Positions 3,675 to 62,879 of a stretch of 64,000 nucleotides of DNA are shown here, piece after piece. This DNA comes from Lepidodermella squamata (lineage: Eukaryota > Animalia > Gastrotricha), in NCBI GenBank assembly GCA_047495785.1, contig JBLDXI010000020.1, positions 2,852,001-2,916,000 of the forward strand. The letters are read 5' to 3'. Each line of letters begins with the position of its first letter. The first letter of the stretch is position 1. Both the position numbers and the translations under genes were made by a program. A model generated the notes under the pieces. The model was not told where the DNA came from. It saw only the letters and a program-made list of their open reading frames with translations, and did not search any database.

Positions 3675-5541
3675 GAGAAAACCTTTTATAGGTATACTGT
3701 GTTATATACAAACTATAACATTGCCTTTGAGACACAGGATTATAAATTATTAAGTTTATAATTTGATGAGATTAATTGATGAATTAATTGCTTGATTGAT
3801 TGATTAGTTAGCGTCTTTGAGTAGGTTGGCTATTTGAGTAAAGATGATTATTCAGGATCCTAATGCTATCCTTAAGGATTTGATGGGCCATATCAACAGC
3901 TGTACTGCTGCTGATTCCGTAATCTTGAAGTAATTGGATCGCTTCTTTGGTTAGCGAGCCCCGTGTGCCGATATAAAGGCCGTGTACTTCTATCGAGTCC
4001 AAATCAAAGGCTTCGCAGATGAACTTGCTACACGGCTCGTAGATCGAACGCTTCTCAATGTCGACATCTCCGAATTGACCTTCTGATGATTCAAATCTAA
4101 TCGTGGGGTCGATGATTGCTCCATGTCTGCTTCCTCTTCGAAATGCCAATATATCAAAACGCCGAGAGGATCCGTTTTCGGCTATACAGTGTCCCTCTTC
4201 AGTGACGTTGTATCCTTGGCGTCGTAGTTCCAAAGCAATCTTCTGGCGGATTTTGTTGTGCCTCGACGTTATCAGCAGCGAGTTAAAGGGGCAGGCGCCC
4301 AGAACGTGTGCTAGGGATTCAATCTCAGCGCCGCATCGGCGGCACTGGCGTCCGTCCTGGCTGACACCCGGTACACCTCTAACTGGAGCCGTGTTAGTCG
4401 ACATTTTCAAAGCCATCGTCCATTCCGCAACACTAAGTCCATTTCTTCGCAGTACCCAGTTGTTTGTTTTCGGTACGCATTTAAACTGTGAAACTCCTCT
4501 TCCTTTTTGATCAAGGTTACACCATGATTGGAATTCCTTCATTCGTAGGCCGTTTCGAATCATTTTTACATTGGGCGGTAGAATCCTTTCAGTGTCTTCT
4601 GTGTAATTTCCTTCCGAGTCACCATCCGAGCCTTCATTCAAATCAGTTTCTGTTAAGTCAACTCCGACTCTAGCGAGACAGTCTGCCATTTCCGATTCAA
4701 GGTCCCTACATGCAAGTACAAGTGGCTCGCCGTTGATCAACAGCTTTCTGCAGATATTGTAAATTTGTAAATATGCTTCCCAGGACGCTTTTGGTAAACC
4801 GAGACCGCGGTGTTTCCGGGCAGAATAAAAGAAACTTGAAGGCGTGCTGGTTGGAAGTCCAATGAATTCTTTAACCACACTTCGCAAAATTGTATCGACA
4901 GAATCAAGGAACGTTTTCCTTATAGCTTTTGCAGGAGCGGTTTGAAAAGGATATATTAGTTTAGGCCATATAAATTGGGTCAATATAGTCAGTTTCTGGT
5001 CGGCGTGAAGAAGATTTGACTTTGCCAACAGTTCGAGCTGGTCTTTGAGTTCTGAGATAACAGCCCCCTCGTCAAAAACTATTTCATCTTTGAACGTGAC
5101 ACCCAAATATTTTATAGTTTCTTCTTCATCGATGGCAGGTATCAAGTCTCCATTGCTCAATATCAACGGCTCTGAATTAAGAACGCCATCTTCAACAATT
5201 ATGGCGACACACTTTTTGACATTGACCTCCAAACCAATCTGCGAAAACAAATTTCTTGCCATGTCAACGAGGTATGCAGCCGATTCGCGGCTGTTTCCGA
5301 TAGGGGTTGTGTCATCGGCAAATCCAAGAACCGATACATTCGGTAGATCAGACGACAATTTGAAGCCATAAGCGTCAGCAACTTCACGTTCGGATAATTC
5401 ACGAAGGACATAATCAATGCAGAGATTAAATATCGTAGGTGATATCGGCGACCCTTGCATCACTCCGCGTTCAAACGTTATTTTAGATGTCCTGAGTCCG
5501 TTTGCTTTGATATGAGTCCGTTTCATATTGAAAAATGGCAA
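3675..5541 (-). mobile_element. 5'-truncated non-LTR retrotransposon with restriction-like endonuclease (R2/NeSL/R4-type superfamily); ORF 3808-5541
   Basis: RT motifs RGVMQGSPISP, FADD and YLG; CCHC knuckle CRRC..HVLGAC; RHN; RRFD..IIDPTIRFE..EKRSIY. The 3' end is defined by identity with the copy at 44064-45131. Confidence 0.9.
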
Positions 5542-8121: not shown

Positions 8122-11100
8122 ATGAAGATGAAATTTGTTAACGCCGTCGCCTTGCTTGCTTTTCTTTGCAATGCTCAGATTATCAGCGGTGCCAAGCTGA
8201 AGCGATTGAGGATAATGGTTACATACCCCATAACCGGAGCAATCATCCGAATGGTCGATCGCCTCACTGGATTCAATATCCTGCTTGACATCGCCAATAA
8301 CAGGAGTGACATTTTACCGGATTATAAACTCGAGGTCGAATACGGCGATGAGTCTGCAGGTGGTAATAATGCCCCAGCTGCTGTCATGGGTTGGCTGAGG
8401 AAGATGGAGACAACAAAGGAGCCTGATCTCAGCCCATCTCCTATAACGCTTGCTGCAGCGAACAGCAATGGCTGTAAAGGTATAGGTGCATTCATACATC
8501 ACGTCAATCTAGTGACGGTCTCAGGAACCTGCACAGCCTCTTATTTAGCTGAAAGAAGCAGATACCCTAATTTGTACCTAACCATGCCAGTTGCAGGACC
8601 GAAACAGTACGGCTACGTTCGATTTGTACGTGATATTGGTAAATGGAGTCGCTTGGGACTAGTAGCCACGCCTGATAGCTCTAATGATTTCAACACTGCT
8701 ATCTTTTTCCATAAAATAGCAACTCAGCAGGGTGTAGTATTTGCGTGGTTCGACGCGCCCATTAAGTTTGATTTGGAGCGAGCTAATTCCCTAAAACAAA
8801 GCGATGCGAGAATCATTGTAGTGATGTCGTCACAGCGCGCCGTTTTTATACAGTTTCAATGCGTGACCTATCACGCTGGCATTACGGGTCCACGATATAT
8901 TTTCATAACTTTTGACAATGCCATTGCAAATCCTACTTCAATACCTGACGACGCAATACCTTTTGGGTGCTCGCGCTCAATTATCTCCCAGCAGATGAAA
9001 CAAACCTACTGGACACTAGTAAAAATAAGTTATTAGCTAGCAGGGCTAGCTAGCCGCTAGCTAGCTCACTGTTTCAGCACTATGTATAAGGTGGGATATC
9101 TAGCGCGCAATGAAAAGTTGCTAGCTAACGGATCAAGTTGCTAAATAGCGCAACGCTTAGACGCGAATATTGACAAGCTGCTATAGAGAGCTACCTAGCA
9201 GGTTATTTCGTAATCTAGCTGCTAGCTAGCATATGATCGTGCCTCAATGCGCTATCTAGCAGGACCTGAAATTCAAATACTTCCCGCCAACCGCCATTTT
9301 GGATTTTCACCTGCTAGCTAGCCCAAAAATTCAAATTTTTAAGCTAGCTAGCCCAAATATTTGAATTTTCAAGCTAGCTAGCGCACATCTCTCGCACAGC
9401 AGAACTTGAATGCCTTGACATTGTTACATTTTCTCATTTCAACAAGTCAACTTAAACTTAGAGCATCAGAACTCCGGCTAGGTATTGCGGTTACTTTCTC
9501 TGTTTTCCCGCCCGTTTTCATACGAATTAATGTATCGATATTTGTATTTTTTAGATCATAGCTACGATAAAAGTTTAACATCAAACGCGACGCGGCCAGC
9601 AGCCAAGGATCGCTCTATGAACTGGTTTTTACATCGCTTTCATCTTTTATTTCAGTAACAAAGTAAGTAACAGTTATTTGATAATTGCTGAAATATAATT
9701 TTCTTGCCTGTTTTTAGTTCTTGCAACAAGCTGTTTGATCCTATGCAATATCAATAGATGCGCTATACTAGCCGCGGTGGCTGTTCAAATTCTAATACTG
9801 CTGCCTAACTGCTCTCGTCGACTATCGTTATCTTCGGCCATTTAGTATTTTTGTTATTGCTTCTATGTCATGTTAACGATCGTTCTCGAGTGCTATGTTA
9901 TGCTTCTGAAATTACCAAGTTGTTTTTTTGCGCTAATGACAAATGAATACATGCTATCTAATAAAAAAGAAGGTTCAAAAATTGACTTGACTGTAATTAA
10001 CTCAAATTACGAGAAAACCAGGAAGGAGAGGATAGCGGGATGGCTAGCTAGCCATGAAAGTTATAAAACTAGCCAGTCCTGCCCTATTTAGCACCCAGTG
10101 CTATATAGTGGGATGGCTAATATAGCAGCCTGCTAGGCAACGAAGCTGCTACATAGCGCGCCTTGTTACTATTATCTAGCAACTTTCTACATAGAACATC
10201 GTGCGCTAGTTAGGGGGGCACCAGGCTTATATATAACGGGTTACTAGCTAGCAAGTGAAGTTTCTAGCTAGCGCAAGACGCTAAAACTAACTAGCAGCTT
10301 ATTTTTACTAGTGGATGGTAGATTTAGATGGGATGGTCGACCTAACACAAAAAAGTTCTTTTGGTCTGAATAGAGCAGAATTGGACAATCTCATCTGGAG
10401 GTATAAAAACTCCTCGATTCCGGGTCCTGATTACGACTCACGACTACCTCACCTTGATGCGATGATGCACATAATTCTGGCGCTGAACAAAACTGAAGTC
10501 ATGCTCAACTTAGAGAATCTAACACTTAGTGACTATAAAACGAATGGCAGCCGGACTATGCAGCTAGCGAATCGCTCGGTGCTAACAACTGAATACTTCG
10601 GCCTGAGAACTCCAAGAGTGCGATACGATTCGAATGGCCAACTGTTCGGCATACCAGGTTTCATCAGCTACTGGACGCCAGAAAAATCATTCGAAAAAGT
10701 GGTTCAAATCAATCAGTATGAGAACAGTTCCTCGGAATCCTATGATGCGTATTCAATAAAACCACTGGCGCGGATCCTTTGGCCGAGTGAAGACGGAAGT
10801 TCTCCGCGAGATTCCCGACAAGTCGTCACGGAAATTCTCGAACCAAGTCGAGCTTTTTTAATCGCAATATCTTGTTTCGCAGCGATTATCGCTGCCGCCC
10901 AATTAACAAGTCTAATTGCATTATTTAAGCAGCGAAACGTAGCACCTCTTTCGTACTCAATGTTTGAAATCAAAATGCTTGGAATTCTGGGTTGTTTGAT
11001 TCTCGATGTCGCAGCTATCTTCCATTCATTGAAAAGCAGTGATTGCTACTTTTTGGGCGTGCTAAGAATTATTTCGGTAGCGGTCGCATTCTCACTGGTT

Positions 11101-31738: not shown

Positions 31739-33925
31739 CTATTTTTTCGATGACATCAATTTATCAATGACACACTGCGTCGATTTTCTAGCCGCGTCAA
31801 GGTCGTTGAAAGACAGCTGATTGCGCGCACAAAACGCCGCAAACATTTTACAACTCGCAAAATCGTCAAAATCCCGCTCATCCCGCCTGTCACGAATAAA
31901 CTCGTGATCAGGCTCCAGCATAGCAACCGATCTCGAACCAGCCAAATTGACATTGGGCGGGTGAAAATTGATGATGTAGACGAATCGTTTTTCCAACAAA
32001 TTTTCAACGAGTAAAATGTCCGAAACTAGGCGACGATTCGGCGCGTTCGCAGCCATTCGAACCCACTCTGGAATGGGGCGTTTCATGATTGAGCCCGCGG
32101 CCTTCTCAAACCACCGGCACGGGTTCTCGTCGAAAACATCGACGACAATAGGCATGAGATCGAAGGACATGCAAAATCGATCCGCAACCGTGTAATACCG
32201 ATCGAGAAAGCCGAGCCGGCCTGCGTCCTCGAAAATGGACATCAGCCATTCGTTTGAGAATTGGATCGAGCCAGCGCCAAAGAAGGACGCCTCGGGCAGG
32301 GCGGTTTTGTGAGTATTGACGTTAGCCAGCATTTGGGTTGAAAAAATGACTTGGTCGAAGCCGGACGCTTTCGCGTACAAGAAATACGCGAGTAGTAATT
32401 GGCAGAATAATTCCGAGTGTAAGGTATCGTCGACGCCTTGTAGAAAGCCGGGCGCGCCGAAGTTTGAGATGAAAACGCGGCGTTTATTGGCATCGGGCGT
32501 GTTAGCGTCGGTGAATTCTTGAACGAAAAGGCCGAAGACGAGGTAGTAAAAGCCGGCGATTTCTTCGAATAGGAATATTGTCTTGATTGTTGATTCGATG
32601 GCGGATTCTGAAGGTCTGAGGTTGAGCAAATCTTGCACGAATTGGGACTTGAACTAAAAAAACCAAAATAAAAAAATCAAACATAAAATAATAATTGAGG
32701 AAATTAACTAATTAACTAAGTCCCAAATTTTGACAAAAAAAGTTGTTGGAAGAAGAATAATTTTCTAAAATGAATGTTGTCGTGGTATTCGATAAGTTTT
32801 GAAAAATTGCAAAAAATGGCCCATGAATTTTGAAGAATATCGAACGTGTACATTTTCATAAAAAAAAATTGATGTGTCAATAAATAAATAATTTTTTCCG
32901 GCCAAATTTTGCGAAAAAATATCTTAAGCTAAAAACGGAAAATAACCGGAATAATAATTGTTGAGAGAAACCCAAAACGTCGCGGAACATAATTTAGGGT
33001 GCGTATTACGTGTCGCGCTTTGCCTAATTTGCGCGCAACCTTCTGTTATGCGCGACATTCGAATTATTTTGCGCGACGCTTGTCCAAGACTCGTAATTTT
33101 TAAGTATAATTTTTTGCAAAAATGATATCATTTTCCTCACCTCAGTCGATGTTTTCGAAGCTGAAACCATTCGAACGGCAATCTTGACGTCGTTTAAATT
33201 TTTCGCGGTAAGAAATTCGTTGATTTTCTTCTCGATCAAGCTGCCTAGAAACGTCTTCGGCAAACCTAAATATCAATAACGAAAATTTATAATAAAACCA
33301 TAATAAATATCTCTAAATTTTACTTTGAGCAGTATTAAATGGCGTTAATTTCGGCATTGACGGATCCGTAGACGCCTCGGGCGATTGTTGAACCGGAGTA
33401 TCCGGCAGCGGCGAGACCATGGTAGAGATAGACGAGATCCAAGTTCTGTTCGGCGGCGGCGGAGCAGGAGGGTAGCTGAACGCGTAGTCACCCATCGCCG
33501 AATGCGGCGGGGTCGGAACAGCCGTCGACAAGCCAGAGTCGCTGCGAGGCGCCCCGGGTGATGCGGGTGCTGAATGCGTCGGCAGGGGTGACGGGGCAGG
33601 GACACCAGGTGGGGGCATGCTGAATTGCGCCGGGTTCATAGGCAATTTCAACGGCTCCATCCCGTTCAAAGTCTTGCCATGCGCGTGAAGTTGATGAGCT
33701 GTTAACGCCAAACCGCTTGGCCAGATGGTTAGACACAACTGTAAATTCGGAAAAATATTCAATTTTCGATTATATTTTCAAATTAATTTTGAATACCTCG
33801 CATTGGAACACGCGTATGTTAACCGCGCTATTGAACTGCTTTTGAATGCTGAGCTGGCCGTGTTGACGCGAACTTGGCCGGTTGCCATGCGAAGATTGCG
33901 GCCGGAGTGTCTTCTCGTTACCCAT
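31739..33925 (-). CDS. C2H2 zinc finger - degenerate p300/CBP HAT (KAT11) fusion, gene 1; exons 33925-33797, 33738-33324, 33265-33141, 32653-31739 (527 aa)
   Basis: All GT-AG junctions are phase-compatible; finger FQCE|LCLTIWPSGLALTAHQLHAH; HAT-like LPKTFLGSLIEKKINEFL..VRMV, KTIFLFEEI..FGLFVQEF..NKRRVFIS and LSFNDLDAARKST. Confidence 0.75.
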
Positions 33926-34756
33926 GTAACAATCGATTGTGTTTAAAGCGTTCTGATTAAATTTAAATCGATACGAAAATCGCACGTGTTGCGAAACGAC
34001 TTTTGTGTTCCAATTGTAAATTTCAACCGTGTTTCGCAATTATTTGTTGACTTAGTGCCTTGTTGCGATGAGGTGCGACACTTGTCGGTAATCAGAGGCC
34101 GCGGATTAGCAGCCTAATCCGCACCTTGTGTTGACGCCAAGACGCTCTCTTGTTTTCAAACACGCGCAAGACCTGTCCTCTCGATCGTTTTAATAAACCG
34201 CCAATTACTTCATTATATTTTCGACAGGCAAATATCGCAATAATGCGCCAAGTCTCGTTAAACACCGGTGTCAAGGTTGAACTTGTAAAAACTAATTAAA
34301 ATCAAAGCAAGCAATAAAGCTGAAACTGCGCGAAATTTACAAAAAAAATGGCTGAAAAGATTGGAAAACCAATTCGACTCAATTTTTGAAATTTTCGAGA
34401 AAGAAAAATTTCAAAATTTGAAAATTCTGAGAAATGGGATTTCAAATTTTTTTAAATTCTAATTTCAATTTTTCAGAATTTTAAAATTTTAAAATTTCAA
34501 TGTTGATTTTTTAGAATTTTTTCAATTTTCGAGAAATTAAAATTTTAAAATTCTGAAAAATTACAATTATATTTTACTAATTTTTTAATTCTAACTAAAT
34601 TCAAATATTCGAAAAATTTTCGCCATGAAAGTCCCAAATTATCTCGGCAAATATTCAACAATTTTGCGCTGTTTTGGCAGACATGATCATTTTTTGGCAT
34701 TAAAAAGCGGGAAAGCAGCATTCATAACTTGTTCAATGTCTCGAAAATATATCGCA

Positions 34757-37559
34757 TCACGAGTTTCTGCTATTTTGTTGCGAACAAGCCGCAATTTTGT
34801 ACACAATATTAGCCGTCGCGTTGATAGCCAACTCAAGCGTGTCGAATCGCCAGTTTTTACGCCGACATTTCGCCAAAAATCGCGCCGGGGTTGACAGAAA
34901 TTTTGGCCGTTTTACATAGCAAAAATCGTTAGTTTCATCCGCGTCAAAAGCCGGCGTTGCCTCGGCGGTGTTTTTTCGATAACCAGGCGGCTGGGCGTTG
35001 ATGACAATGAATTGATGCCCGGATAGCAGGTCGTACATCAGCACATCGGCCATAGTTCGCGAGTGGTCGATATCGCGAGACGCTGATCTATCGATTTCAA
35101 TCCAATCACGGCGGTGTTTGCGCAGCAGGTTAACAGCCGCGCTTTCAATAGTAGCCGACCACGCCGCCTCGTCACCGTCATGGTCGAAAATGAACAGCGG
35201 AAATCGCCGCTCATCCACGCTGGTATCTCGGCAGTAGTGCCGGTAGTCGGCTAGCGTTTGAAAATTGCCGATATAGGCAAGTTGCGATGACGTCTTCGCA
35301 TCGTTGAACACGCTAGCCAGCCAGGCGTGACGGAATTTGATGGCGTTGTCGCAGTGGAACACATTCGTATTTTCGTTTTGCGTCTCGAATTCGGCTATCA
35401 TTTTCTGCGAGAAGTACACCTGTTCGAAGCCGCGTGACGCTGCGTAGTTGAGGTAGCTGAGCAAGAAGCGGCAGAAAATTTCCGAGTGCACCGAGTCGTT
35501 GATGCCCTGCAAGAAGCCGGGCGCGCCGAAGTTGGAGACGAAAGCGCGGCGGCGATTTGCGAGCGGCAGTTCGTCGTCGAATTCTTGTACGAATAGTGCG
35601 AAGACGATGACGTCAACGTTGCCGAAGCGTTCGAATAGGAAGAAGGTTTTCGCGGAACATTCGACTCGAGGCGACGGTAGTTGGAACAGATTTTGGACAA
35701 AGGTACTAACCTATGAAGAAGAGAAGTATTGAGGTTAATGAGTTTCTTAAAAGGTCCAACAATAATTGCACCACTGAAATTGAGGCTTCAGCTCTAAATT
35801 TGCCTATTTTTCTGAGCTTTTGCCTTTCCTTTTTTGATTGATACCGATCTATCGTTTGGACAGGGTCCTAGGAAAGACTTGAAAAACCATATTTTGGGGA
35901 AATTTAGTGCTGGAACCCTAACCCCGGAACCCTGTAACCCCTTAAATTTAGAGTGTCACTATATTATAAGCTCAGTAAACTGGAAATCACCCTATCATCT
36001 GCGAATTTGTCATTGATTCGAGCTCGCCGACCGTTTCTGATAGTGAGCTATTCGCGTGCCCCGACATTTGAGCAAACGACAATTGAGCAAACAAGCTGTT
36101 CAGAAAATTTGTTTCCTTTGTGAATAAAAAGTTTTTCAAAAGAATTATTCTGGGCTACTCGGTATAACTGATTTGGGCAGACCGTCAAAACAGCAAATAC
36201 CTGAAACAGCAAAAGCGACAAAACAGCAAATTTTTCAACTTGCGACATAACAGCAGAAAAACGATGATGTAAAAAACGATGTTAGTAAGTTTTTGCTCTT
36301 TTGTCGCGAATTTGCTATTTTGTCGCATAGTCGTTCTGCGAAGTTGCTGTCATGTCGCTGGACCCTGATTTGCGGACGATAAAAATATTCATTTTGCTTA
36401 TGCGCCCTGCTCGTTTGTCGTTTGCTCAAATGTCGGCACACAACAATTTCTCACCATCAGAAACGGTCGTCGAGCTCGAATCAATGAAAAATCCACAGAT
36501 GATAGGGGTTGGGGAATCTTATCACGGGTCAAAAAAATCTCTCACACAATCCGAAATATCAGTGAATTTCGATAATTAAGGCCTGAATATTCATTTGACG
36601 GACTTACCTCGAACGCCTTTTTGGTGGACGATACCACGCGGACTGCTATATGAAACTTTTTTGAAAGCTTTCTTTCAGCGAGGTACGACTCGATTTGACT
36701 CTGAATCGCCTGGCTTGCATAGGTTTGAGGCAGAGCTGCGTAAGAAATAAAATATAATAATTATGACCTAATTTACCAAAGTTGAATAGAATGTACCTTT
36801 TGCGTTGAAGCGATGTTTCGATTTTTCGTTGCTATTGGACCCGCAGCAATCAGCCAGTTCGTGGTGCTCGTTCAACGTTTTGTGCAGACGATAAGCGGAA
36901 TGTGTCGGAAATAACTCGAGGCAAACATTGCACCGGTAATACTTGTGCGGCTCAACTGGAGGCCGGTCATCATTATTGCTATGACTCTGATGTTGGTGAT
37001 GTTGGCGACAATCAAACTGCGGCGATGGGGTGGGTGGCACCGAAGTCGACCGTTTCCATTGCTGGTTCCGGTTATCGTAAGAATCAGACCGTGACCGAGA
37101 TAACGGGTAATTATTATTCCTAATAACTTCTTCAATACTGTCCTCCAAGCTATCCTCGGCATCGAAAAATCGGTCGCCATTTTCGCTGTTGTCGTCAATG
37201 AAAGAAACCCGGTTCTTCTGGTACCGGTCGTCGCCACGTTGGTACCGGTGTTGATTCTGATCTTGGTACCGAGAGATGTTGTAGTCGCTGTGATGTTTAC
37301 TCCGTTCGATTGTCGCCTGCTTATTCTTGTAAGTCTCCCCGCCATTTCGGCTGTTGTGAAATTCTTCATGGTGGTCTTGCAGATCGGACAGGTGGACAAA
37401 GCACTGCGGGCATAAGGCGCATGAGATGAATTTTTTGCCACCTGGTTGGCGCAAATAGCTGCTACGCGTTATCGCCTCGGTCGCCTCGTCCTCGGACAAA
37501 TCGCACGAGTCGTACCAGCGCAGCTTTTTGCGCACCGCTTTTTTACCGGTTTTGTTCAT
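34757..37559 (-). CDS. C2H2 x2 - degenerate p300/CBP HAT fusion, gene 2; exons 37559-36797, 36735-36608, 35710-34757 (614 aa)
   Basis: Fingers CALC..HHEEFH and CNVC..HKTLNEH; middle exon LPQTYASQAIQSQIESYL..IAVRVVSS; last exon KTFFLFERF..FALFVQEF; phases 1 and 0 are consistent. Confidence 0.75.
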
Positions 37560-42700: not shown

Positions 42701-43811
42701 ATGGCTACTCAAACTCAACAAGAAGTTTGCGCCATGCTTCAATCTGTTTCGAACGCGGCACTGCACGGTTCGATGGCGAATCTTTCGCTTGAAAACTCGA
42801 CCTCGCAAGACCAGTTCGAAGAGCCTAAACACCAGGTGAGAATAATTTCTTTAAAAAAAATCATCAACTAATGTTGGGAATTTATTGATTAATTTTGGAA
42901 AAATATAATAAAAATTATTTCATAATTATAAATTTTGTTCGAATCATAAAATTCAATAAAAAGTCAACCTGTGCTCAAAAATTAGAATATTTAAACCACA
43001 GGCGGGCAAGGTTATTCTTGATTTTCCTGCAAATTTTGAGAATTTTGAGAATTTTTCCATTTTTATCTAAATTTTGGCAATTTAAAATGTGTTTGGCTAA
43101 TTTTGGATAATTATTCGATTGTATTAAATTTTCTCTTTCTCTCAGACTTTACTTCCGAGCTCGCCCGAGAAAAGCCTAGTCGCCATCAAGCCGCAAGTTC
43201 TCGCCGATCTGATGGATGGCAAGTTCGCAGGCTGCGTCGAAACTTTCGAAATTGCCGACTGCCGCTACCCTTACGAGTACGAGGGTGGCCACATTCGCAA
43301 TGCCGTCAACACACCGCTAATGTCCCAGGTCGAAACCGTTTTTCCGATCACCGGCCAGCCAGGCAACAACCAGCGCCGCGTTATCATCTTTCACTGCGAG
43401 TTCAGCAGCCAGCGCGGCCCGGCGATGCTGCGCCGGTTTCGCAAGGCCGATCGCGACCGCAACAAGGCCAACTACCCGCGGCTCGACTACCCGGAGGTGT
43501 ACCTGCTCGAGGGTGGCTACAAGGCGTTCATCGAGTTCTGCGAAGCCAACGGCCGTTTCGACTTGCTGTCATCGACGCAACAGCTCGAATCGCGCCGCAG
43601 CTATTACGTAACCATGCGTGACGCTGCTTTTCACGCTCAAGAGCGAAACTGGCGCCGGGCTGTTGATAACGACCGAGCTTCTACGTCGTCGTCGTCATCC
43701 TGTTCGAGCAGTAATGTCGATGCGACTCCGCCGAGCAAGCGCCCCGCCGGCAAACTCGGTCTTCGAAGCCTGTTGCCGAAACGTCGTCTCGACCTTGAAA
43801 TCGAGGCGTAA
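42701..43811 (+). CDS. cdc25: Cdc25/string-like M-phase inducer phosphatase; exons 42701-42835 and 43146-43811 (266 aa)
   Basis: DCRYPYEYEGGHI, IFHCEFSSQRGP (HCX5R), DR..N.YP.L.YPEVYLLEGGY; phase-0 intron. Confidence 0.9.
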
Positions 43812-46619: not shown

Positions 46620-49600
46620 ATGATTAATCCACTAGAGCAACAAAACTCGCAAGAGACGCCATGCGAAATTTGCACCAAGCCAACCTTCAGCATACGCTGC
46701 GGGGTGTTTGCCTGTGAAGCTTGCAAGGTAACCATATCATATAATATTTATGGTTTATGGATGGTGAACATCTGTAACGATTAGTTATTGTTTTGATATT
46801 GTTGTTCATGTTTGTTTGGCATTTGGCCATTGTACTATCAGCTCATTCATAACTTGGCTTCTATTGCGTTTCCCTCATTAGTCATAGCTGTGGCCTATAA
46901 TAAGGCGTAGATGTATCATTTTCAGTATTCTGGTTATTTTCAATGAATAAATCAAGCATCTCGGGAAACGTTGACTCTTCATGACAAAATAACCAGAATC
47001 CAAACTTTTTTTCGAAACTTCGTATCTTTCGTATCAAATTTTTTTTGAACCATGAATGTCGAGGATCAACTCACCGAACTCATTGCGCGTTTCAATGGTC
47101 TTGAAATCTCAGTTAATGAATTGCAGACCGGGCTTCAAGCAGTTGGCAATCGGCCTGTTTTCGAGCCGAAAAGAGGCGGGACCCCGAAACCATTCAAAGG
47201 CGACCGCAAAGAATTCAGAACGTTCTGGAGCCAGTGTATTCTTTATTTAGGCATGAATGCTTCAATTTACTCGACCGATCCGCTTCGCGTTGGCTTTGTC
47301 ATTTCTCTTCTTCAAGACAGCGCCGGAAAATGGGCCGCTCCTTTGTTGGAAACAAATCATGCTTTGCTGACAAATTTTCAAAATTTCGGTAACGCCCTCG
47401 CTGCTGTTTTCGACGACCCTTCCCGACAAATTGCAGCTGAAAACGCACTCGATGTACTCAGGCAAGGAAATCGTACTGTTGCTGAATTCACTTCGGAGTT
47501 CACGTTGTTTCAAGTCGATGTTCCTTACAACGAAGCAGCCCTTATTCATATTTATCGTCGAGGTCTCTCGCAGGAAATCCGTGATCATTTAACTCACTAC
47601 CCGTTACCTACAACACTGGCCGAATTAATTAAGACAGCTACTCAAATCGACCGCCGTTTGGCTGAACGCCAGGCAGAAAAGCAATTTGAAACTCATCATT
47701 ACCAAGCCTCGAGTAACTTGCCAAGCAATTATCAAGTATCATACGCAGCGGGAACTAATGCTGCTGGTGCTAATGGTCACATGGCAATGGAAGTTGGCCG
47801 AGTGGCGCGTGCGCCCATTGATGGCTTTGAACGCGAACGTCGTCGTCGCCTTGGCCTGTGCTTTTATTGCGGTTCGGCTGGTCATCTTGTTGCTCGCTGC
47901 CCTACGACCTCTTCGAACCGCGCGAACCGGGTTAACCGTGATTTTCCGAATTACTCTAATGCTAAGTCAAACTCTAATAAACAAGGAGATAATTACACTG
48001 ATGAGCTTTTTATTTTACAAGGTATGGTCATCGAGCCGCTCACTGATCGTGGCGCTTTCGCCGTTGTTTTGGTGGATTGCGGTGCAGAGGGCAACTTCAT
48101 GGATGCGAGATTCGCTCGGCAGCGTGGCATTTCGTTGGTTCCTAAGCGTGCACCTGTCCGTTTGGAAGGCATGGATGGTCGGATGCTGGGTTCTAGCCCG
48201 ACAACTCTCGAAACCGTTCCTCTCCTGCTTGAGTTAGCTGGCCACAAAGAATTAATTAGGTTCGATATTATGGAGAGCCCGCACTATCCCGTTATTCTAG
48301 GAATGCCCTGGTTGAAGCAGCACAATCCGAGCATTGATTGGGCGAATAACACGATTCATTACTCCTCTCGTTACTGCGCTGATCACTGTCATGCCGAAGG
48401 TCAAGAAAACTCGTCTACTGGCCGCGTACTACTGGGCGGAGTTCGTCAAGATAAATCGAATGCTAAGCCAAGTACGGTCCTGCCTGAGAAGTACCGCGAG
48501 TTTGCCGATGTGTTTGACGAGAAAGAAGCTGACAAATTACCGCCGCATCGCCCTTACGACTGTCAAATCGATCTGGAGCCAGGAAAAAGCCCGCCGTTTG
48601 GTCCGATTTACAGCTTATCCGAAACTGAACTCGAAGTTCTGCGAAAGTATTTGAAAGAAAATTTGGCAAAAGGCTTCATTCGTGCTTCAAAATCATCCGC
48701 TTCTTCGCCAATAATGTTTGTCAAGAAAAAAGACGGCACCCTAAGACCAGTTGTCGACTACCGCGGGTTGAACAAGGTCACTAAGAAGGCGCGGTACCCC
48801 TTGCCATTGATACCGGAACTCATCGATCGCATTGGAAAAGCCAAGGTCTTCACTCGCCTGGACCTCAAAAATGCGTACAATCTACTTCGAATTCGAGAAG
48901 GTGACGAGTGGAAATCCGCCTTCCGTTCAAGATATGGCCTCTTCGAATATTTGGTCATGCCATTCGGCCTGTCTAATGCCCCAGCAGCATTTCAGCACTT
49001 CATGAACGATTTGTTTCGCGACATGCTAGATTCTTTTGTAGTAATTTATTTGGATGATATTTTGATCTTTTCGAATAGCCTGGACGAACACGAAGGTCAC
49101 GTTCGCCAAGTCCTTCAACGACTGCGTGAAAACCGACTTTTTGCCAAGTTAACGAAATGCGAATTCGAGGTAACAAAAGTTGATTTCCTAGGTTTCGTTG
49201 TCGGCACCGATGGTATTTCAATGTCGCCCGAGAAAGTCGAAGCCATCCGTGATTGGAAAAGCCCGACTACCTTCAAGGAAGTTCAGACCTTTCTAGGTTT
49301 CGCCAATTTCTACCGTCGTTTCATCAACGATTTCGCCAAGGTTGCCAAGCCACTGAATCAACTCATGAAGAAGGATATCAAGTCTTTCGTATGGGACGAC
49401 CGTGCTGAACGAGCCTTCTGCGAATTGAAGAAGCGGTTCACTTCAGCTCCGGTACTGGTCCACCCCGACCCGGATAAGCCATTTGTTGTTGAAACTGATG
49501 CCTCGAATTTTGCTGTGGGTTGTATTTTGTCACAGGTTGCTTCGGATGGCTTACTTCACCCGTGTGCTTACTACTCGAGAAGTCTAACGTCGGCTGAACA

Positions 49601-52600
49601 AGGCTACGGCATCTACGACAAAGAACTGCTGGCTGTCAAGGTCGCGTTCGAAAATTGGCGCCACTATCTCGAAGGGGCGCGGCACCGTGTTACGGTTCTA
49701 ACTGATCATCGGAACTTGGAATTTTTCGAGTCCAAGGTCAAGATCCTCAATCAACGTCATGCGCGATGGGCTCAGTTCTTTTCCCGCTTCGATTTCGTTC
49801 TAAGCTATCGCCCTGGTTCAGAAGCCGGTGACGCCGACGCCTTGTCGCGAAAACCTCAGCTTCAATTGCCAGGTACACAGTCGATCGAGCCTCAGTTTGT
49901 ATTGCAGCCAGCAAATCTTCGCATACTGGCCACTCGCTCATTCGTCTATGCCGAAGACCCCCTGGTCGATCGAATTCGTGCAGCGCAAACCAAGGACAAC
50001 TTCGCTATCGCCGCCCGCAACCGTCTCGCTGGTAAACCGGCCTCAATGAACATTGACCGAACACGTCTCAGCGAAGCCAACGGTGTTCTACTTTATGAAA
50101 ATCTCATTTACGTTCCGGCTGAATTGCGTCTCGAGATTCTCGATTCTCGACATGATTGCAAACTGGCTGGTCACCCTGGTATTAACAAAACGATCGAGCT
50201 GATATCACGCGATTATTGGTGGCCGGGTCAAGCAGCGTTCATCAAAGCGTACGTTCGTTCCTGCGAAACTTGCCGCCGTGTGAAATCAAGCCGGCACGAA
50301 CCCTATGGACTTCTTCAACCGCTACCGACGCCTTCGCGGCCATGGTCATCGATATCGATGGATTTCATCACTGACCTGCCGCCTTCACAGGGTAAGACAT
50401 GTATTCTGAATGTTGTTGATCGCCTGACTAAAATGGCTCATTTTATTGCATTTCCTGGTTTACCGACCGCCGAGCAAACGGCCCAAGCTGTCCTGGACCA
50501 GGTGTTTCGACTTCACGGTTTGGCCGACGACGCCGTCAGCGATCGTGGCTCTCAATTTTCATCTCATTTTTGGAAACGATTTCTCGAATTACTCAATTGC
50601 CAAGTCAAATTGTCGACTGCATTTCACCCGGAAACTGACGGTCAAACGGAACGGGTTAATCAGCAGTTGGAACAATATTTACGATGCTTCACTTCTTATC
50701 AACAAGATGACTGGTACGAACTCTTACCACTCGCCGAATTCGCCTACAACAACACTTCGCATTCTTCAATCAACACTTCGCCATTTTTCGCAAATTACGG
50801 GTTTCATCCGCGATTCGACATTTCAACGCCGTCTTCTTCACAAGTACCCCGAGCCGAGTTCCGTGCAAAAAATCTGGCTGATGTTTCTCGAGTTCTAGTC
50901 AATCATTTGGATAACGCGAAAGCTCGATACAAAAATTTTGCCGATCGTCATCGCCAGGAAGCGCCATTGGTCAAAGTCGGCGACAAAGTTTGGCTCAATT
51001 CAAGAAATCTTACTACGACGAGGCCGTCAAAGAAGTTGGATTACAAGAAAATCGGACCTTTCGTTGTCAAAAGCCTGGTTGGTCAATCAGCTGTTCGGCT
51101 TTCTCTTCCGCATTCTCTTCGCATTCACCCCGTTGTACATGTCTCTTTGATCGAACCTTATGTTGCTAATGAAATCAAGAATCGGATTCAGCCGCCACCT
51201 CCAGCTGTTACAATCAACGGTGAACAAGAGTTTGAAGTTCGCGCAATTTTGGATTCCAAACTCGAGCGAGGTCGCGTCAAGTACCTCGTTGACTGGTGTG
51301 GCTACGGCCCAGAAGACCGCACTTGGGAACCGCCTGGAAATTTGTCTCATTCGGCTGATTCAGTTGCTGATTTTCACCGACGTTATCCTGAGAAGCCGGC
51401 GCCTCGAAAGCCGTAAGGAGGGTGTGGTGTAACGATTAGTTATTGTTTTGATATTGTTGTTCATGTTTGTTTGGCATTTGGCCATTGTACTATCAGCTCA
51501 TTCATAACTTGGCTTCTATTGCGTTTCCCTCATTAGTCATAGCTGCGGCCTATAATAAGGCGTAGATGTATCATTTTCAGTATTCTGGTTATTTTCAATG
51601 AATAAATCAAGCATCTCGGGAAACGTTGACTCTTCATGACAACATCTCTTTTCCAGAAATTCTTCTTGAGGAATCGCCGGCTGTTGAAAGACTCCATACC
51701 TTGTAAAACCGGAACGAACAACTGTGACGTCATATACCTACGGGGATTCCCAGCCTGTTCGAAATGCCGATTGGCGAAATGTTATGCTGTAGGAATGAGA
51801 GTGAAAAGTATGTGTACCCGATATGATTGTTTTCAAACCGATGACTGCTCCATTGTTTTTATCAGGAGAAAATCGAAGTACTACCAAAGACCGAGCTAAG
51901 CTTGAGCTTGAAATTAAGATGGAACCAGTTCAAATATCTCACGATCCACCTGATTTGTTAGCTATCAATGCCGAGATGATGCTTCAGTCATCAGTCATCG
52001 CGCAAGCATCATTGGCAGATCTTCAAAACGTGAGAATTTCGTTTTTTTCCGTTATGTATTGCTATTGCCTTGACTTGAATTTAAAGTTGCCAGTGTCACA
52101 TTCAAGTGAAGTGCTCCCCCTCGATTGCAGCAGGGTAGTTTGGCAGCGAGGCATGGACAATTTTACGCAGATATCCAGAATTTGCACATCTTTCGTAAAG
52201 AAACTGCCATGTTTGCTTTCGTAAAGAAAAATACTTGTAGCATAACTTCGTATCTGATTTGTCTAGGTTATTCAGATATACCTGTATCAGATCGCTGTCA
52301 GTTATTCGGAAAATCGATATTCCCGATCACCGTATCTCAATTGTGCACTTATGGGAAGCCGTTGTGGGGCATGAACGAGATCAATCGTTGCGAGCTTATG
52401 CGCCATTTTCCGATTTTTCACGTATAATAAATGCGAATTTAGTCTGTTTCGCCAATTTATTTTTATGATCTAAAAGGTATCTGCTTCTCAAATCGACGAT
52501 GTCGATCGAGCAATTCAATTGTGGCAACCTTCGCCAGCCGAACTAGCTCTACTTCAAGCTCTGTTTTTCTATTGTGGTAGTGAATCATCATAAATTACCG

Positions 52601-57401: not shown

Positions 57402-60400
57402 TCAGAACAAAAATCGGCCAGCCTTAACTGCCGAATCATACGTGTCAAAAGCAATATTGTTTTTTGAGCAAGTTTCAGCAAAGTCAACCGCATCACTGAG
57501 GTGAGCCGGCTGATCACCGTTCATCGGTTCAAAATCACCGCCATTATTGATATCATCAGATGCATCCTGAAGCAGTTGCACGACTAAAAAATTTTCATTT
57601 TCCAGCAAATTGAGCAAAGCGATGTCGATAGGGCGACGAAGGCTGAGATTCGACAAATTATGAAAGTCACTTGTCAAGATTTTCGCTAAATTCTTCTCAA
57701 ATCCAGCCAGCCACTTCGACCGAGAATTTTCGATAAAAATCGGAATTTCCGAAAATTTATCAGCGCATTTCGATAAAGGCTGGACCGAGTCAATAATTCC
57801 GGAATTTTTCGCCTCTTCAAACACAGAATTTAGCCATTCGGTAGAAAATTTATTTTCGTTACGATCGAAAATGAAATCCGAGCAACTTTCCGCCATAGAT
57901 TTCGTCGAGAAAAGCACGCGTTTAACAGACGTGAATCGCTTCAAATAGCCTAAATAGGCGCGTAAAAATTGCGAGAAAATCTCCGAATACAGGCTGTCGT
58001 TGTTGGCATTTCGAAGAAACCCAGGCGCGGCGATGTGAGATACAAATACGAGATTTTCGTTGGCACATGGAATCGATGAGGTGGATGATTCGTTGATTTC
58101 GTAAAATTCCTGGGTAAATAACGCGAAAGTGACGACTCGATCCGTTGGCAACGGGCCGTTTTCGAACAGGAAAAAGCTTTTTGATACATAATCAATCTTT
58201 GGCTCGGCGAGTTTCAACAAATTTTGTACGAAGCTGTTGACCTAATACACAAAAAATAATTATATATAAAAATTGCCGAATTAAAGAAAATCAGAAACAA
58301 TTCCAATCAAGAATAAAAATATAACTGTGATTTCCATAGCTCAAAAGTACCAAATTTGGGACAAGAAGAGGCTCGGGAACGGAACCAAATTCCGTGAGTT
58401 ACAATTCACAATAAAATTCTACGAAATTATCTTCAAGAGCCCGGAGTAATCATAATTTTTTGTAATTTTCCCATCGTCCAAGTTCCGCAGCCTAAAAATG
58501 TGGACTAAATGTCCCCAAACATGGTTTTTCGAGTTTCGTGATCTCTTTTAAATGTCAATGCCATTTATATCCGGGTGTAAATGTTCCTATAATCAATTTC
58601 GGGTTTATCATCATTAAATTAGGGCTCTCGCCAGCGAAACGGAAATATAACCGCCATCAATTTTGCTACTTTCGCCAACAAACTGGATTTTCTCCGACAA
58701 ATCCGAAAATACCCGCTGATTAGGCCGAAAACTTTTAGAGACATAGCCTGTCCATGTCAGGTACCTAAATTGATGGCGTTCTCCGTTTCGCTGACGCAAG
58801 CCCCAATTTAATGATGAAAAGCCCGAAATTGACGGTGAAATTTGAATTTTCCGGTTTGTTGATGAAAGTCCCAAAAATTGATGGTGAAACTCTAAATTTG
58901 ATGCTAGAAAGCATTTCCCCTTTATATCCTGTCTAGCCTTATGAATGTAAGAGTCTCTGAAGGTAAAACGCTGCTTCAACCACAAAGACCTTGGCCTTAT
59001 TGTTGACCATCAAAAGCGGAACTTCGAAGCACATTCATCGATTCGACGTACAGCAACGTGACTCATCTCGGCTATTGGTTCTCTACGAATTCAGCTATCT
59101 CAAATAAGCATGACAAAGCGGTCCCAATTGCATTCTTCGCGATTCATACCGACGATGCTGCTTACATTGACGGCTTTCAAGGCTCGATGCCAGGCCGTTT
59201 CCTGCGGGCGATTTATACCCCGATGTAGGATGCTGGCTACTTATTCAAATTAATGTTCGAATACATTATCGAGCAAAGTTGAAGTTAGTGAGCTACCAGG
59301 TGGGGGATGAAGGGTTGTCTATGATCCGAACGAAGAAGAGCAGGAAGCGATTCGTCTTTGCATCCATGAGTGTAAAATTTTTGCTAAAAAATTGCCAGCG
59401 TCAGCTATCAATAGAAAAATGTGCCGTTCTTCACCTGGGTTCTAAAAACCCTATTTACTCTTACTTTATCTCGCAAGTCTCGGATAACTGGATCTGGACG
59501 GGAAACGGAAAGTCCACCTGGCGACACTACTCTGGCGCTGCATTAATGGCGAGGGCCCAGTGGCCATTGCCAACTTTTTTAAACCTCGAAAGCAATCTCA
59601 AACATTTCGGAAGTGCCCGGGGCCAAGCCAGCGATTATGGATCGATGTTTGGCTCACAATGGATCGGTATTTTGGAATTCTCTCCCCGACCACGGATTTT
59701 CTGGCAGGTTATTTCGCAGTAATTATAAGCCAATACACCTTCGATTTTACGCCGAACTCGGATTTTCGAGGAATCGCCCGCGAATTTGTTCTCACGAATC
59801 AAATATCTAGAGAAGAGTCCAGTCGGGTGGCGAGTATGCTGAATCGCTCCAATAGCTACTCTGCTTAAGATTCTTCAAGAGTTCTCTCCTGGCAATATCG
59901 TGTATGCCAACGCGTTATTTTGGTGTCTATAACCGGATCAAACACTCGCCTTCAAAGGTGAGAGGTGTTCTGAGAGGAAACGTTTGAAGAGCAGAATAAC
60001 GGTTCTAGCAGCGGCAAGTTAGTTCGGGAAAAAACTCCCGTAATTGTGATCGGAAAATATGAATCCCCTCGACGTTTCAACCGCTTGAAATATCGAGCCA
60101 TCAGGGCATCTCTATGGAGATGAAAATCACGCTCAAATTAAATGATTTTGAGCTGTAAATTGTTAAGTATTCTAGTTCGCCTTGGGTCTTCCTCAGTTAT
60201 ATTCGAAAATAACAAACAAATTCTATTATTAGTTCTGCCACACCACGAGAAAACATGTTACCATCTACAGCTACGCCTCAACACTACCGAACAAGGAGAT
60301 GAAGACTGTTGTCAAAGGTCTCGAAAAAATGATGGCCATTCTTGGGCCGAGTAAGAAATTTTTTAAGATCGTGGAATTGTAACGGTGTCATCATCAACAC

Positions 60401-61506
60401 AAACTTTGCTGTTAGTCACATTTCCCCGTATTGGAGGGCGCGATTTTACAGCTTACCGCTGCGAAGCAACTTACTCGAAGTGTAAATGATTGCTAAGTAT
60501 ATACTCTAAGTGTAGGGTTCCAGCTCCGAATTTGAGACTCCAGATTTCCCAAACAATAAGAATCTCAGTTTTTGTTATCAACAGGCCTAACCGTCTCCAT
60601 ATTACGCGTATTGTTCGATGTTAGCTGTCAGTTAACGACCTACATAGAACCGATATCGATTCCAAATATCGATTTTATAAATCAGTGATTTTTCCGATAT
60701 CAACCCGCTTGGAACCCATGAGTACATAGCTGAGGGCAAAACGTAGCCATAAAGTAAAAAAATCAGTATCGATCAGCAATAAAAAATCGATATTTGAAAA
60801 CTTCGGATAATTCGATTTTCGAGCTCCACATTGCAAAAATGCTTCAATTTTTGATTTTGTTTAATTTAATTTTTAATCAAAATTTTTGATAAATTCCCGG
60901 TTTGATTTTTTATTAATTCTACAAATTTTAAAAGCCTATTATTATTTTCAGTAAACTCACCCAAATTTTTCTGGCCGCAGAAGCTGATTTTAGCTGAACG
61001 TTGAAAACTTCACCATCAGCTAGCACGAGATGCCGCTCGCGCAAAAAATCGCGAAAAATCGATTGCAACACCGCATCTCGACTGGGTGGCTTCTCCGATT
61101 TTTCCGGCTGACTTTGACGCGTTATTTCGGCAACAGGAGTTGAGGAAACAACCGAATCAGTTGTAATAGAATTAGAGCTGATTTTACAGCTCAAATTCAA
61201 CGCAGATTTGTCATCTTCAATCTGCGGTCCACTTGGCGCTCTCGAAAAATTGTGAGCGTACAGTGGGAGAGGCGATACCAGACTGCCGTGAGCTTGGTTG
61301 AAATTCATCGCAATCGCGTGAGGAACGGGCGTCTCGTAGAACGAATTCATCGGCTCGACTTTCGGCTTTTTCGGCTCGGGTGACTCGGTGTTATCGTGAG
61401 CCGGCGAGTCGCTGCTCGCTCCGCCAGTTTCGCCGCAACTAGCCGGGTGTTTGCTTCGACGATGTGATCGCAGTGAAGCAGGGTGAGTGTAAGTCTTCGG
61501 GCAGAA
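57402..61506 (-). CDS. C2H2 - degenerate p300/CBP HAT fusion, gene 3; exons 61506-60961 and 58241-57402; first exon not located
   Basis: Exon starts FCPKTYTHPASLRSHRRSKH; LQSIFRDFLRE..VQLKSAS; last exon KSFFLFE..FALFTQEF..APGFL..FDTYDSA. Confidence 0.68.
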
Positions 61507-62879
61507 CTGGAGAAATTAAAAGAATGATTTTAGCAAATGCCGTCATTTTAGAAGGCTAAAAATTAAGCTTGTTCTCAAGGAAAATCCTAAAAATTCCCTC
61601 GCTTCGCTAGAATTTTGAATCAGTCGTTGTAGTCGAAGGACTAATATGCGTTTTTTTCATCGCTGTCGGCCTAATCCTGCTGATTGTAATACGACGCCTC
61701 ATTCGCAGTCTGTTTGAAGGTTATCAAACAAAATGACATACAATATGTCCCATTCAAGTAACGCAAGCAAAGAAAATACCCGGAAAAGGGTTCAGAAACT
61801 CAACCACGGAAAATGTGAGACGAAGTCACATCTCATGGCCAAAACTTTTTTTAGAAAAATTCAAAAAATCACAGAAATAGTAGTCAAGTATTTTTTCAAT
61901 TGTTTGCTAATGAGATTAAAAATGTCCGGAGAAATGTGGTCCAACCGGGTAAAATACCGAAAATTACCGAACCAGTTAACATCGGGGTTTTCCGTGTTTT
62001 CTCCGGTCCATTTTTCATTTCTTGAGTTAAATCGTGGATAACAGATAGAACATTCTCTCGGTTAGGTGTAATTTAAAAAAATTACAGGAATTTTTTACAA
62101 AAATTTGCCACATTCAAAAATAAATGCGCAACTTCTGGGACACGTTGTAGAAATTTAAATTCTTAATTATGGCGTGTCAATTTCAGCTGAATTATTTTGT
62201 AAGCAAAACAAATATTGGTTCCATTTTTTCAGCGGAAGTTTTTTCACTCTTGCAAGTTTTCTCATCTGTCGTTGAAATTTAAAGCTAATATAAAAAATTA
62301 GGCCCCGGCAGACCTTGGAAAACCTTGGTGATTCCAAAGACTCGAGTTCAACTACGACTACTGAGCTCGTTCCTCTCGAAAACAATACATCGGCGCAGGA
62401 CAATGACACGCGATAGAATTCGAAATTCTATATGCTGCAACGATTTCTCAAACTTGAACCTTCCGTTAAGCAAATCTCTGGCGAAATAGACATTTCGCTT
62501 TTTCGAGCCAGCGTTAAACAATTAATATTTATTCAATTTTTAAAAATCCCTTCAAAGTAACTGATTTTCTAGTTTTAACATCGTAAAAAACGTATTCCAT
62601 CGCGTATACAACAAAGAGAAGTCGCTTGGCACCAGATCTGGCTGAAAAACTAATATTCTTCTAAACGTCCTACATGGCCCACCTCTGCCAAGTTGCCATG
62701 GTTCCACTGAAAAGAGGTCGTGGTAGACCACCAAAGAATGCTGTTGAACCTGTCGTGGTTGCTGGGCCTGTCCGCACCAGTCTCGAAGTCTCCCCCACCT
62801 GCTGCTAATGCTACGGCTAAGGCTTCTGTTCCTGTCGATTCAAAACCCGCCCCAACCTACGCTTAGCGAACTACGACGT

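Follow-up and report, generated by a model that had tools for sequence, protein, structure and literature searches.

The acetyltransferase p300/CBP (KAT3) is among the best-studied chromatin enzymes, and our searches turned up no report of a pseudoenzyme that arose from the part responsible for catalysis. In this study we analyze a 64,000-nt stretch of the gastrotrich Lepidodermella squamata (contig JBLDXI010000020.1, positions 2,852,001 to 2,916,000; hereafter, the window), in which two tandem genes, G1 and G2, and probably a third copy, G3, combine C2H2 zinc fingers with a C-terminal domain resembling the p300/CBP histone acetyltransferase (HAT) domain. The catalytic and cofactor-binding residues of this domain are nearly all lost, and yet the genes are transcribed, spliced, and kept by selection. 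For this reason, they look like a previously undescribed "dead enzyme" family and not like the self-targeting acetyltransferases proposed in the initial annotation of this DNA.

The closest described system is p300/CBP itself. The family domain is homologous to the p300/CBP HAT, collinear with it over its whole length (approximately residues 1280-1665) and of the same fold (Z 24.6); its starting motif, RFNAK-x-LP, resembles that of animal CBPs, and W1466 and the core are kept. Unlike p300/CBP, however, the family proteins carry no bromodomain, RING/PHD, ZZ, TAZ, or KIX domain, have gained C2H2 fingers at the N-terminal side, and have had their catalytic and acetyl-CoA pocket residues replaced and their L1 loop partly deleted. 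The fungal Rtt109 is another stand-alone protein with the KAT11 fold and without the CBP accessory domains, but it matches the family structure less well (Z 11-13.6 vs 24.6), lacks zinc fingers, and shows activity in the presence of histone chaperones, whereas the family derives from the CBP branch. Among partial duplicates of CBP genes, CBP-2 and CBP-3 of Caenorhabditis elegans are truncated paralogs of CBP-1 that lack catalytic capacity and are apparently functional (PMC10320766; bioRxiv 10.64898/2026.08.14.744963), in which they resemble the genes studied here. Nevertheless, the part of CBP that remains in them is the other end, with TAZ1 alone or together with KIX, and we rejected an identity of the family with cbp-2/cbp-3 because the latter have no HAT domain. 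The remaining additional genes listed as "CBP/p300" in C. elegans and P. pacificus likewise consist of TAZ only (PMC11075575). Regarding design, the nearest analogy is ZAP-L/PARP13, in which N-terminal zinc fingers recognize the target and a conserved, dead PARP domain serves as effector or scaffold (PMC8568172). The logic of zinc fingers plus an inactive enzyme domain is the same, but the folds (CCCH fingers and a PARP domain) are unrelated, so this is an analogy only. Full-text literature searches for a KAT11 domain combined with C2H2 fingers, or for KAT11 as a pseudoenzyme or inactive paralog, returned nothing relevant, in agreement with the annotation, to which the architecture was not known from the literature.

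Gene Models

The DNA of the window is eukaryotic in character, and its introns are short. Between positions 37559 and 31739, in-frame GT..AG junctions on the minus strand join separate open reading frames (ORFs) into two head-to-tail genes, G2 (37559-34757) and G1 (33925-31739), encoding proteins of 614 and 527 aa, respectively. Our rebuilt models reproduced exactly the lengths that had been annotated, and the reading frame is intact in every exon of both genes (Table 1). When the window was searched by tblastn with the family proteins, exactly three HAT-like copies were found, the third being G3 (61506-57402, also on the minus strand). The annotated third member is therefore a real copy. At its 5′ end, on the other hand, no canonical upstream exon was found: a search of the 2.5 kb upstream for Cys-x codons with a GT donor directly after them gave no candidate, and G3 may be damaged.

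Homology of the C-Terminal Domain to the p300/CBP Acetyltransferase

Pfam recognized HAT_KAT11 (PF08214) above its cut-off of 22.5 bits in G1 (25.3 bits), in G2 (29.7 bits), and in P0001 (35.6 bits), a metagenomic relative of the family described below. G3 alone gave no match to this profile, yet it aligns with the family. In a phmmer search of the PDB, G1 retrieved p300/CBP HAT chains only (E 3e-6). A profile built from the four family members raised the match to the p300 HAT to E 1e-9 and extended it to the W1466-Y1467 region, setting a Trp-Leu pair of the family against these two residues of p300. Moreover, we aligned the family with the HAT regions of 12 canonical CBP/p300 proteins, whose sources were environmental eukaryotes as well as a crinoid, a nematode, an oomycete, and an alga. 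The two sets are collinear between the FNAK-x-LP motif at the start and the A-x-x-S-T helix at the C-terminal end. An AlphaFold model of the intron-less P0001, with a predicted local distance difference test (pLDDT) of 74 and a predicted template modeling score (pTM) of 0.80, matched p300/CBP HAT structures in Foldseek at E 2e-19 and a template modeling (TM) score of 0.74. The same model matched residues 1298-1663 of p300 at Z 24.6, with 299 residues aligned, while its match to Rtt109 reached a Z of only 11-13.6. The model of P0001 held by the ESM Atlas independently matches KAT11 clusters. Profile, alignment, and structure thus support the annotated collinearity with the whole p300/CBP HAT.

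The module comprises the HAT domain alone, equivalent to approximately p300 1280-1665, and the proteins stop right after it. No Pfam match to TAZ1, KIX, bromodomain, RING/PHD, ZZ, or TAZ2 was found in any family exon, as expected from the earlier description of an excised HAT domain. In a tree of the domain, the family members group in a single clade (100/100). The branch leading to it is very long, and where it attaches among the canonical CBPs is uncertain.

Replacement of the Catalytic and Cofactor-Binding Residues

We took the list of pocket residues from PMC6770547 and numbered the positions via a nematode CBP with the spacing of human p300, checking them against PDB chain indices. Thirteen of the listed residues are invariant in all 12 canonical proteins: Y1397, I/L1398 (conservatively), D1399, S1400, W1436, C1438, P1439, P1440, Q1455, P1458, L1463, W1466, and Y1467. 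Eleven of the 12 also share R1410 and T1411. By contrast, 11 of the 13 invariant residues are gone from every one of the four family members, through replacement or deletion. Particularly, the tyrosine equivalent to EP300 Tyr1467 acts as the general acid, and Arg1462 and Lys1456 contact CoA (PMC12305233); in the family, the catalytic Tyr1467 is Leu in four of four members, R1462 is Phe, and four residues (K1456-K1459) of the CoA-covering L1 loop are deleted, P1458 among them. The family has Asn or His at Y1397, Gly or Ala at D1399, Ala at S1400, Lys or Gln at C1438, and Lys or Gln at Q1455, which survives in G1 only; P1439 and P1440 are variable, and R1410-T1411 is replaced by His/Tyr-Ser. At W1436 we find Ser, or Phe (a Phe being adjacent), the alignment being uncertain here by one residue. 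W1466 is the sole pocket residue kept unchanged. These replacements are common to the four members despite a mutual identity of only 32-57%. The family also lacks the autoinhibitory lysine-rich loop and has a conserved glycine-rich motif, G/A-A-P-G-F-L, at the position of the D1399 loop of p300.

Because catalytic and cofactor-binding residues are replaced and part of the CoA loop is deleted, catalysis of the p300 type by the family domain appears very unlikely. The proposal of a self-targeting acetyltransferase is not supported in view of the replacement of Tyr1467, Trp1436, Asp1399/Ser1400, Arg1410/Thr1411, and Arg1462 and the deletion of residues 1456-1459.

Transcription, Splicing, and Selection

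Two public sequencing runs, X1 and X2, contain the stretch. Coverage in X2, which may be the sample that the DNA derives from, is even, introns included, and X1 resembles a transcriptome. Both 58-nt introns of G1 are absent from X1 contigs, one of which skips 33739-33796 and another 33266-33323; the skipped segments are bordered by CT..AC on the plus strand, which corresponds to GT..AG for a gene on the minus strand. Loose ends of X1 contigs at 32655 and 33141 continue into exons 3 and 4 of G1, and those at 36737 and 36797 into exons 1 and 2 of G2, in each case into the neighboring exon. Together, the joints and loose ends link the finger exons of G1 all the way to its HAT-like exon. For G2, X1 supports the link between exons 1 and 2, and the joint 36608>35710 was absent among the rows listed. 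Depth in X1 dropped to zero in bins within intron 3 of G1, within intron 2 of G2, and ahead of the start codon of G2. These data agree with the junctions annotated from the letters of the DNA. As for G3, 38% of the sampled words of its HAT-like exon are present in X1, which is weak evidence of expression.

We then compared the window with the X1 and X2 contigs and considered the variants listed in the HAT-like exons of G1 and G2 (n = 30). Twenty-eight of them are synonymous and two are non-synonymous, while 23% would be expected to be synonymous by chance (P 5e-16). The HAT-like domain is under purifying selection; the listed variants may be alleles or very recent paralogs, and the constraint is shown either way. 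X2 contains two versions of the G1 region (32066-32588 and 33216-33634) at near-equal depth (~42 of 87), which diverge by some 5-6%, with nearly all differences at third codon positions, and represent either divergent alleles or a very recent duplication.

A Diverged Ortholog and the Spread of the Family

Among 1.84 billion protein representatives, the only close relative was P0001 (E 2e-38), and it was also the only match in word-indexed protein searches. A scan of JGI metagenome contigs found no relatives. With three copies in the window and this single relative, the family fits the annotated picture of a lineage-specific, multi-copy group. P0001 belongs to another organism and comes from an ENA metagenome contig, L001, where we could assemble a gene of 578 aa consisting of an upstream ORF with both G2 fingers, a 60-nt intron, and the HAT-like domain. 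The intron lies after RFNAK, with the same place and phase as in G2. Between G2 and the L001 gene, the fingers, including all eight zinc ligands, and the domain (57% identity) are conserved and the linker has drifted. The retention of fingers and domain in such a deeply diverged ortholog indicates that the fusion is old and conserved. Synonymous divergence (dS) between the two genes is saturated, so the ratio of non-synonymous to synonymous rates (dN/dS) was not estimable and the variant counts given above were used instead.

The nearest entries by features in the ESM Atlas are clusters of short KAT11-only proteins, mostly labeled Nematoda. This is a lead only, but because of it we consider that relatives may exist unrecognized in databases. 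An intron before the V/F-x-x-F-V-Q motif, ahead of the HAT-like core, is common to G1, G2, and G3; L001 (3173-3234, 3350-3360) has the RFNAK intron of G2 but not this one, which is a case of intron gain or loss within the family.

Zinc Fingers and Linkers

The initial annotation assigned one or more C2H2 fingers to each member. G1 has a single finger, split by intron 1, and G2 has two (residues 45-68 and 208-233). All of them match the classical C-x2-C-x12-H-x4-6-H pattern, with the aromatic and aliphatic core positions in place. For G3 the assignment stands only in part, as its exon begins at the second Cys, with the intron position as in G1, and the first Cys is absent from its two exons. 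The low-complexity linkers are present as annotated, Pro/Ser-rich in G1 and polar in G2. There is no tandem array of three or more short-linkered fingers, but one finger, or two approximately 140 residues apart; the second finger of G2 has a long H-x5/6-H spacing, and one finger match also touched zf-met (E 0.26). A single isolated finger or a separated pair, with no tandem linkers, does not establish sequence-specific DNA binding. We also considered whether the finger of G2 next to the domain could be a remnant of the CBP PHD, and rejected this since it follows the classical C2H2 pattern and the similarity of the Cys pair is not conserved in the ortholog.

Interpretation

We assign a probability of about 70% to the reading that a non-catalytic family of zinc-finger plus pseudo-KAT11 proteins, specific to one lineage and amplified in tandem, includes G1 and G2 and probably also G3. 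Each protein has C2H2 fingers of the classical type, one or two in number, followed by a disordered linker of low complexity and, at the C-terminal side, a KAT11 module, the latter being a complete but catalytically degenerate p300/CBP acetyltransferase domain cut exactly at the domain borders. The domain would no longer transfer acetyl groups and may act as a binding or scaffold module for targets such as histone tails or partners of the real CBP, while the fingers would bring the protein to a nucleic acid or a protein partner. 

Several points weigh against this reading. The inactivity of the domain is deduced from sequence comparison, and the KAT11 fold of Rtt109 catalyzes with residues unlike those of p300. 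The glycine-rich motif at the D1399 loop could still hold a nucleotide cofactor. The alignment behind the AlphaFold model of P0001 included canonical CBP sequences, and the G2 domain modeled from a family-only alignment of five sequences gave an unusable pLDDT of 40. That X1 derives from RNA is only a guess. Finally, neither a canonical 5′ exon nor the first Cys of the finger was found for G3, and the fingers scored 15.4-18.1 bits with zf-C2H2 (PF00096; 16.7-18.1 in the window exons), under the gathering cut-off of 25.2, so that a HMMER check of the annotated architecture succeeded for HAT_KAT11 in G1 and G2 and fell short for the fingers. Isolated single C2H2 fingers often score low in Pfam.

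The kept fold, with W1466 and the hydrophobic core in place, the strong purifying selection, the conserved glycine-rich loop at the former cofactor site, and the precedent of Rtt109, with catalytic residues different from those of p300, would also suit active acyltransferases of altered catalytic chemistry that are guided by their fingers to their own targets, as the earlier annotation had it. We nevertheless regard active enzymes as quite unlikely, considering that the general acid Tyr1467 is Leu in every member, that replacements affect Trp1436, Asp1399, Ser1400, Arg1410, Thr1411, and Arg1462 alike and the CoA loop has lost four residues by deletion, and that the lost positions are invariant or nearly so in an alignment spanning animals to oomycetes and algae. 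It is highly improbable that the genes are functionless, decaying duplicates of CBP with fingers that are chance Cys/His patterns: the exon frames of G1 and G2 are all intact, synonymous variants exceed the others 28:2, X1 contains spliced transcripts, and the deeply diverged ortholog keeps eight zinc ligands and 57% identity in the domain beside a drifted linker. Decay would fit G3, with no resolvable first exon, a 2.7-kb intron insertion, and no Pfam match of its own, as well as the transposon-rich region.

A further alternative accepts the loss of catalysis and sees the proteins as regulators whose fingers bind RNA or protein and not DNA, so that they would serve as decoys or adaptors in the CBP pathway without being targeted to chromatin. 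We hold it to be unlikely. The presence of one or two widely spaced fingers without a TGEKP-type tandem array, the long histidine spacing of the second finger, and the weak zf-C2H2 matches, one of them touching zf-met, are in its favor, but single fingers with basic flanks can bind DNA, and no result obtained here separates binding to DNA, RNA, or protein. Within the preferred reading of a non-catalytic finger-KAT11 family, a more specific proposal is that the family represents expanding, finger-targeted decoys of CBP/p300, whose dead HAT domain would dock on histone tails or on CBP substrates and partners and locally block or redirect acetylation. We offer this as a tentative and rather doubtful idea; if true, it would amount to a lineage-specific, fast-diversifying repressor system with a logic comparable to that of the KRAB zinc-finger genes.

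A domain that was excised at its borders, lost its chemistry, gained fingers, and was multiplied while still being preserved by selection would let nature itself show which roles the HAT fold has besides catalysis, for example, in substrate docking or scaffolding. The family would also join the conserved dead enzymes that act as regulators, of which more and more are known.

Locus Layout and Genomic Surroundings

The features of the three copies are collected in Table 1.

Table 1. Exons, introns, and candidate elements of the finger-KAT11 genes in the window.
Feature	Position	Strand	Evidence
G1 exon 1: start codon plus the first finger half, which ends one residue past the first Cys	33797..33925	-	X1 contig joint 33738>33797, skipping 58 nt, CT..AC
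G1 exon 2: remaining finger half, followed by the linker rich in Pro and Ser (P 25%, S 14%)	33324..33738	-	X1 joint 33263>33322, 58 nt, cut +2
G1 exon 3: HAT-like N-terminal helix and strand, LPKT... motif, ~ p300 1284-1325	33141..33265	-	X1 loose ends 33141, 32655
G1 exon 4: KAT11-like putative pseudo-acetyltransferase core and C-terminal part, stop codon	31739..32653	-	HAT_KAT11 25.3 bits; p300 HAT E 3e-6; 23/25 listed variants synonymous
G2 exon 1: both C2H2 fingers, of classical type (aa 45-68, 208-233), with polar low-complexity linker between	36797..37559	-	Fingers conserved in L001 ortholog, linker not
G2 exon 2: HAT-like N-terminal part, immediately past the conserved RFNAK boundary	36608..36735	-	X1 loose ends 36737, 36797 link to exon 1
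G2 intron 2: 897 nt, enlarged by high-copy foldback element (arms 35990-36089, 36408-36507)	35711..36607	-	X2 depth to 8,488; X1 depth 0 in bins 35879-36077, 36277-36475
G2 exon 3: KAT11-like putative pseudo-acetyltransferase core and C-terminal part, stop codon	34757..35710	-	HAT_KAT11 29.7 bits; 57% identical to P0001; 5/5 listed variants synonymous
G3 exon: second half of C2H2 finger, linker, and HAT-like N-terminal part in one exon	60961..61506	-	zf-C2H2 16.7 bits, covering only positions 6-23 of the profile
G3 HAT-like exon: 279 aa, most divergent copy	57402..58241	-	tblastn vs G1, G2, P0001 E 1e-20 to 1e-25; alone no Pfam match; X1 has 38% of sampled words
G3 intron: 2.7 kb, same position as G1 intron 3/G2 intron 2, with inserted DNA	58242..60960	-	ORFs of the intron without Pfam match
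Candidate first exon of G3: seven codons, the last two for Cys-His, with which the finger would be completed to C-x2-C	61733..61753	-	No GT donor after it

The large intron of G3 compares with 487 nt in G1 and 897 nt in G2 at the equivalent position; it contains ORFs on both strands, none with a Pfam match, and is probably enlarged by an unclassified insertion. The element in G2 intron 2 (35990-36507) is of the foldback or miniature inverted-repeat transposable element type, with 100-nt inverted arms that are 86% complementary and 318 nt apart. X2 contig depth rises to 8,488 over it against ~65 in its flanks, and it is therefore a very high-copy repeat.

The gene cluster sits between an array of intron-less class-C G-protein-coupled receptor (GPCR) genes and retrotransposons, in a region that is transposon-rich. 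The array (719-30296) holds at least six mostly intron-less genes on both strands, each encoding approximately 800 aa with ANF_receptor and 7tm_3 domains, and one of them is interrupted at ~9014-10313. Its nearest Atlas clusters by features are labeled as diatom and not as animal, which is uninformative. On L001, an ORF at 7925-8833 matches ANF_receptor (E 1e-9) 3.6 kb from the G2 ortholog; together with the array beside the family in the window, this suggests a loose conserved synteny. On the other side, a rhodanese-like ORF (43212-43811, E 2.5e-12) lies between the family cluster and an uninterrupted 1454-aa ORF (47052-51416) of a Ty3/gypsy chromodomain retrotransposon, comprising gag, protease, reverse transcriptase, RNase H, integrase, and chromodomain. 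A separate reverse transcriptase fragment is located at 3808-5541.

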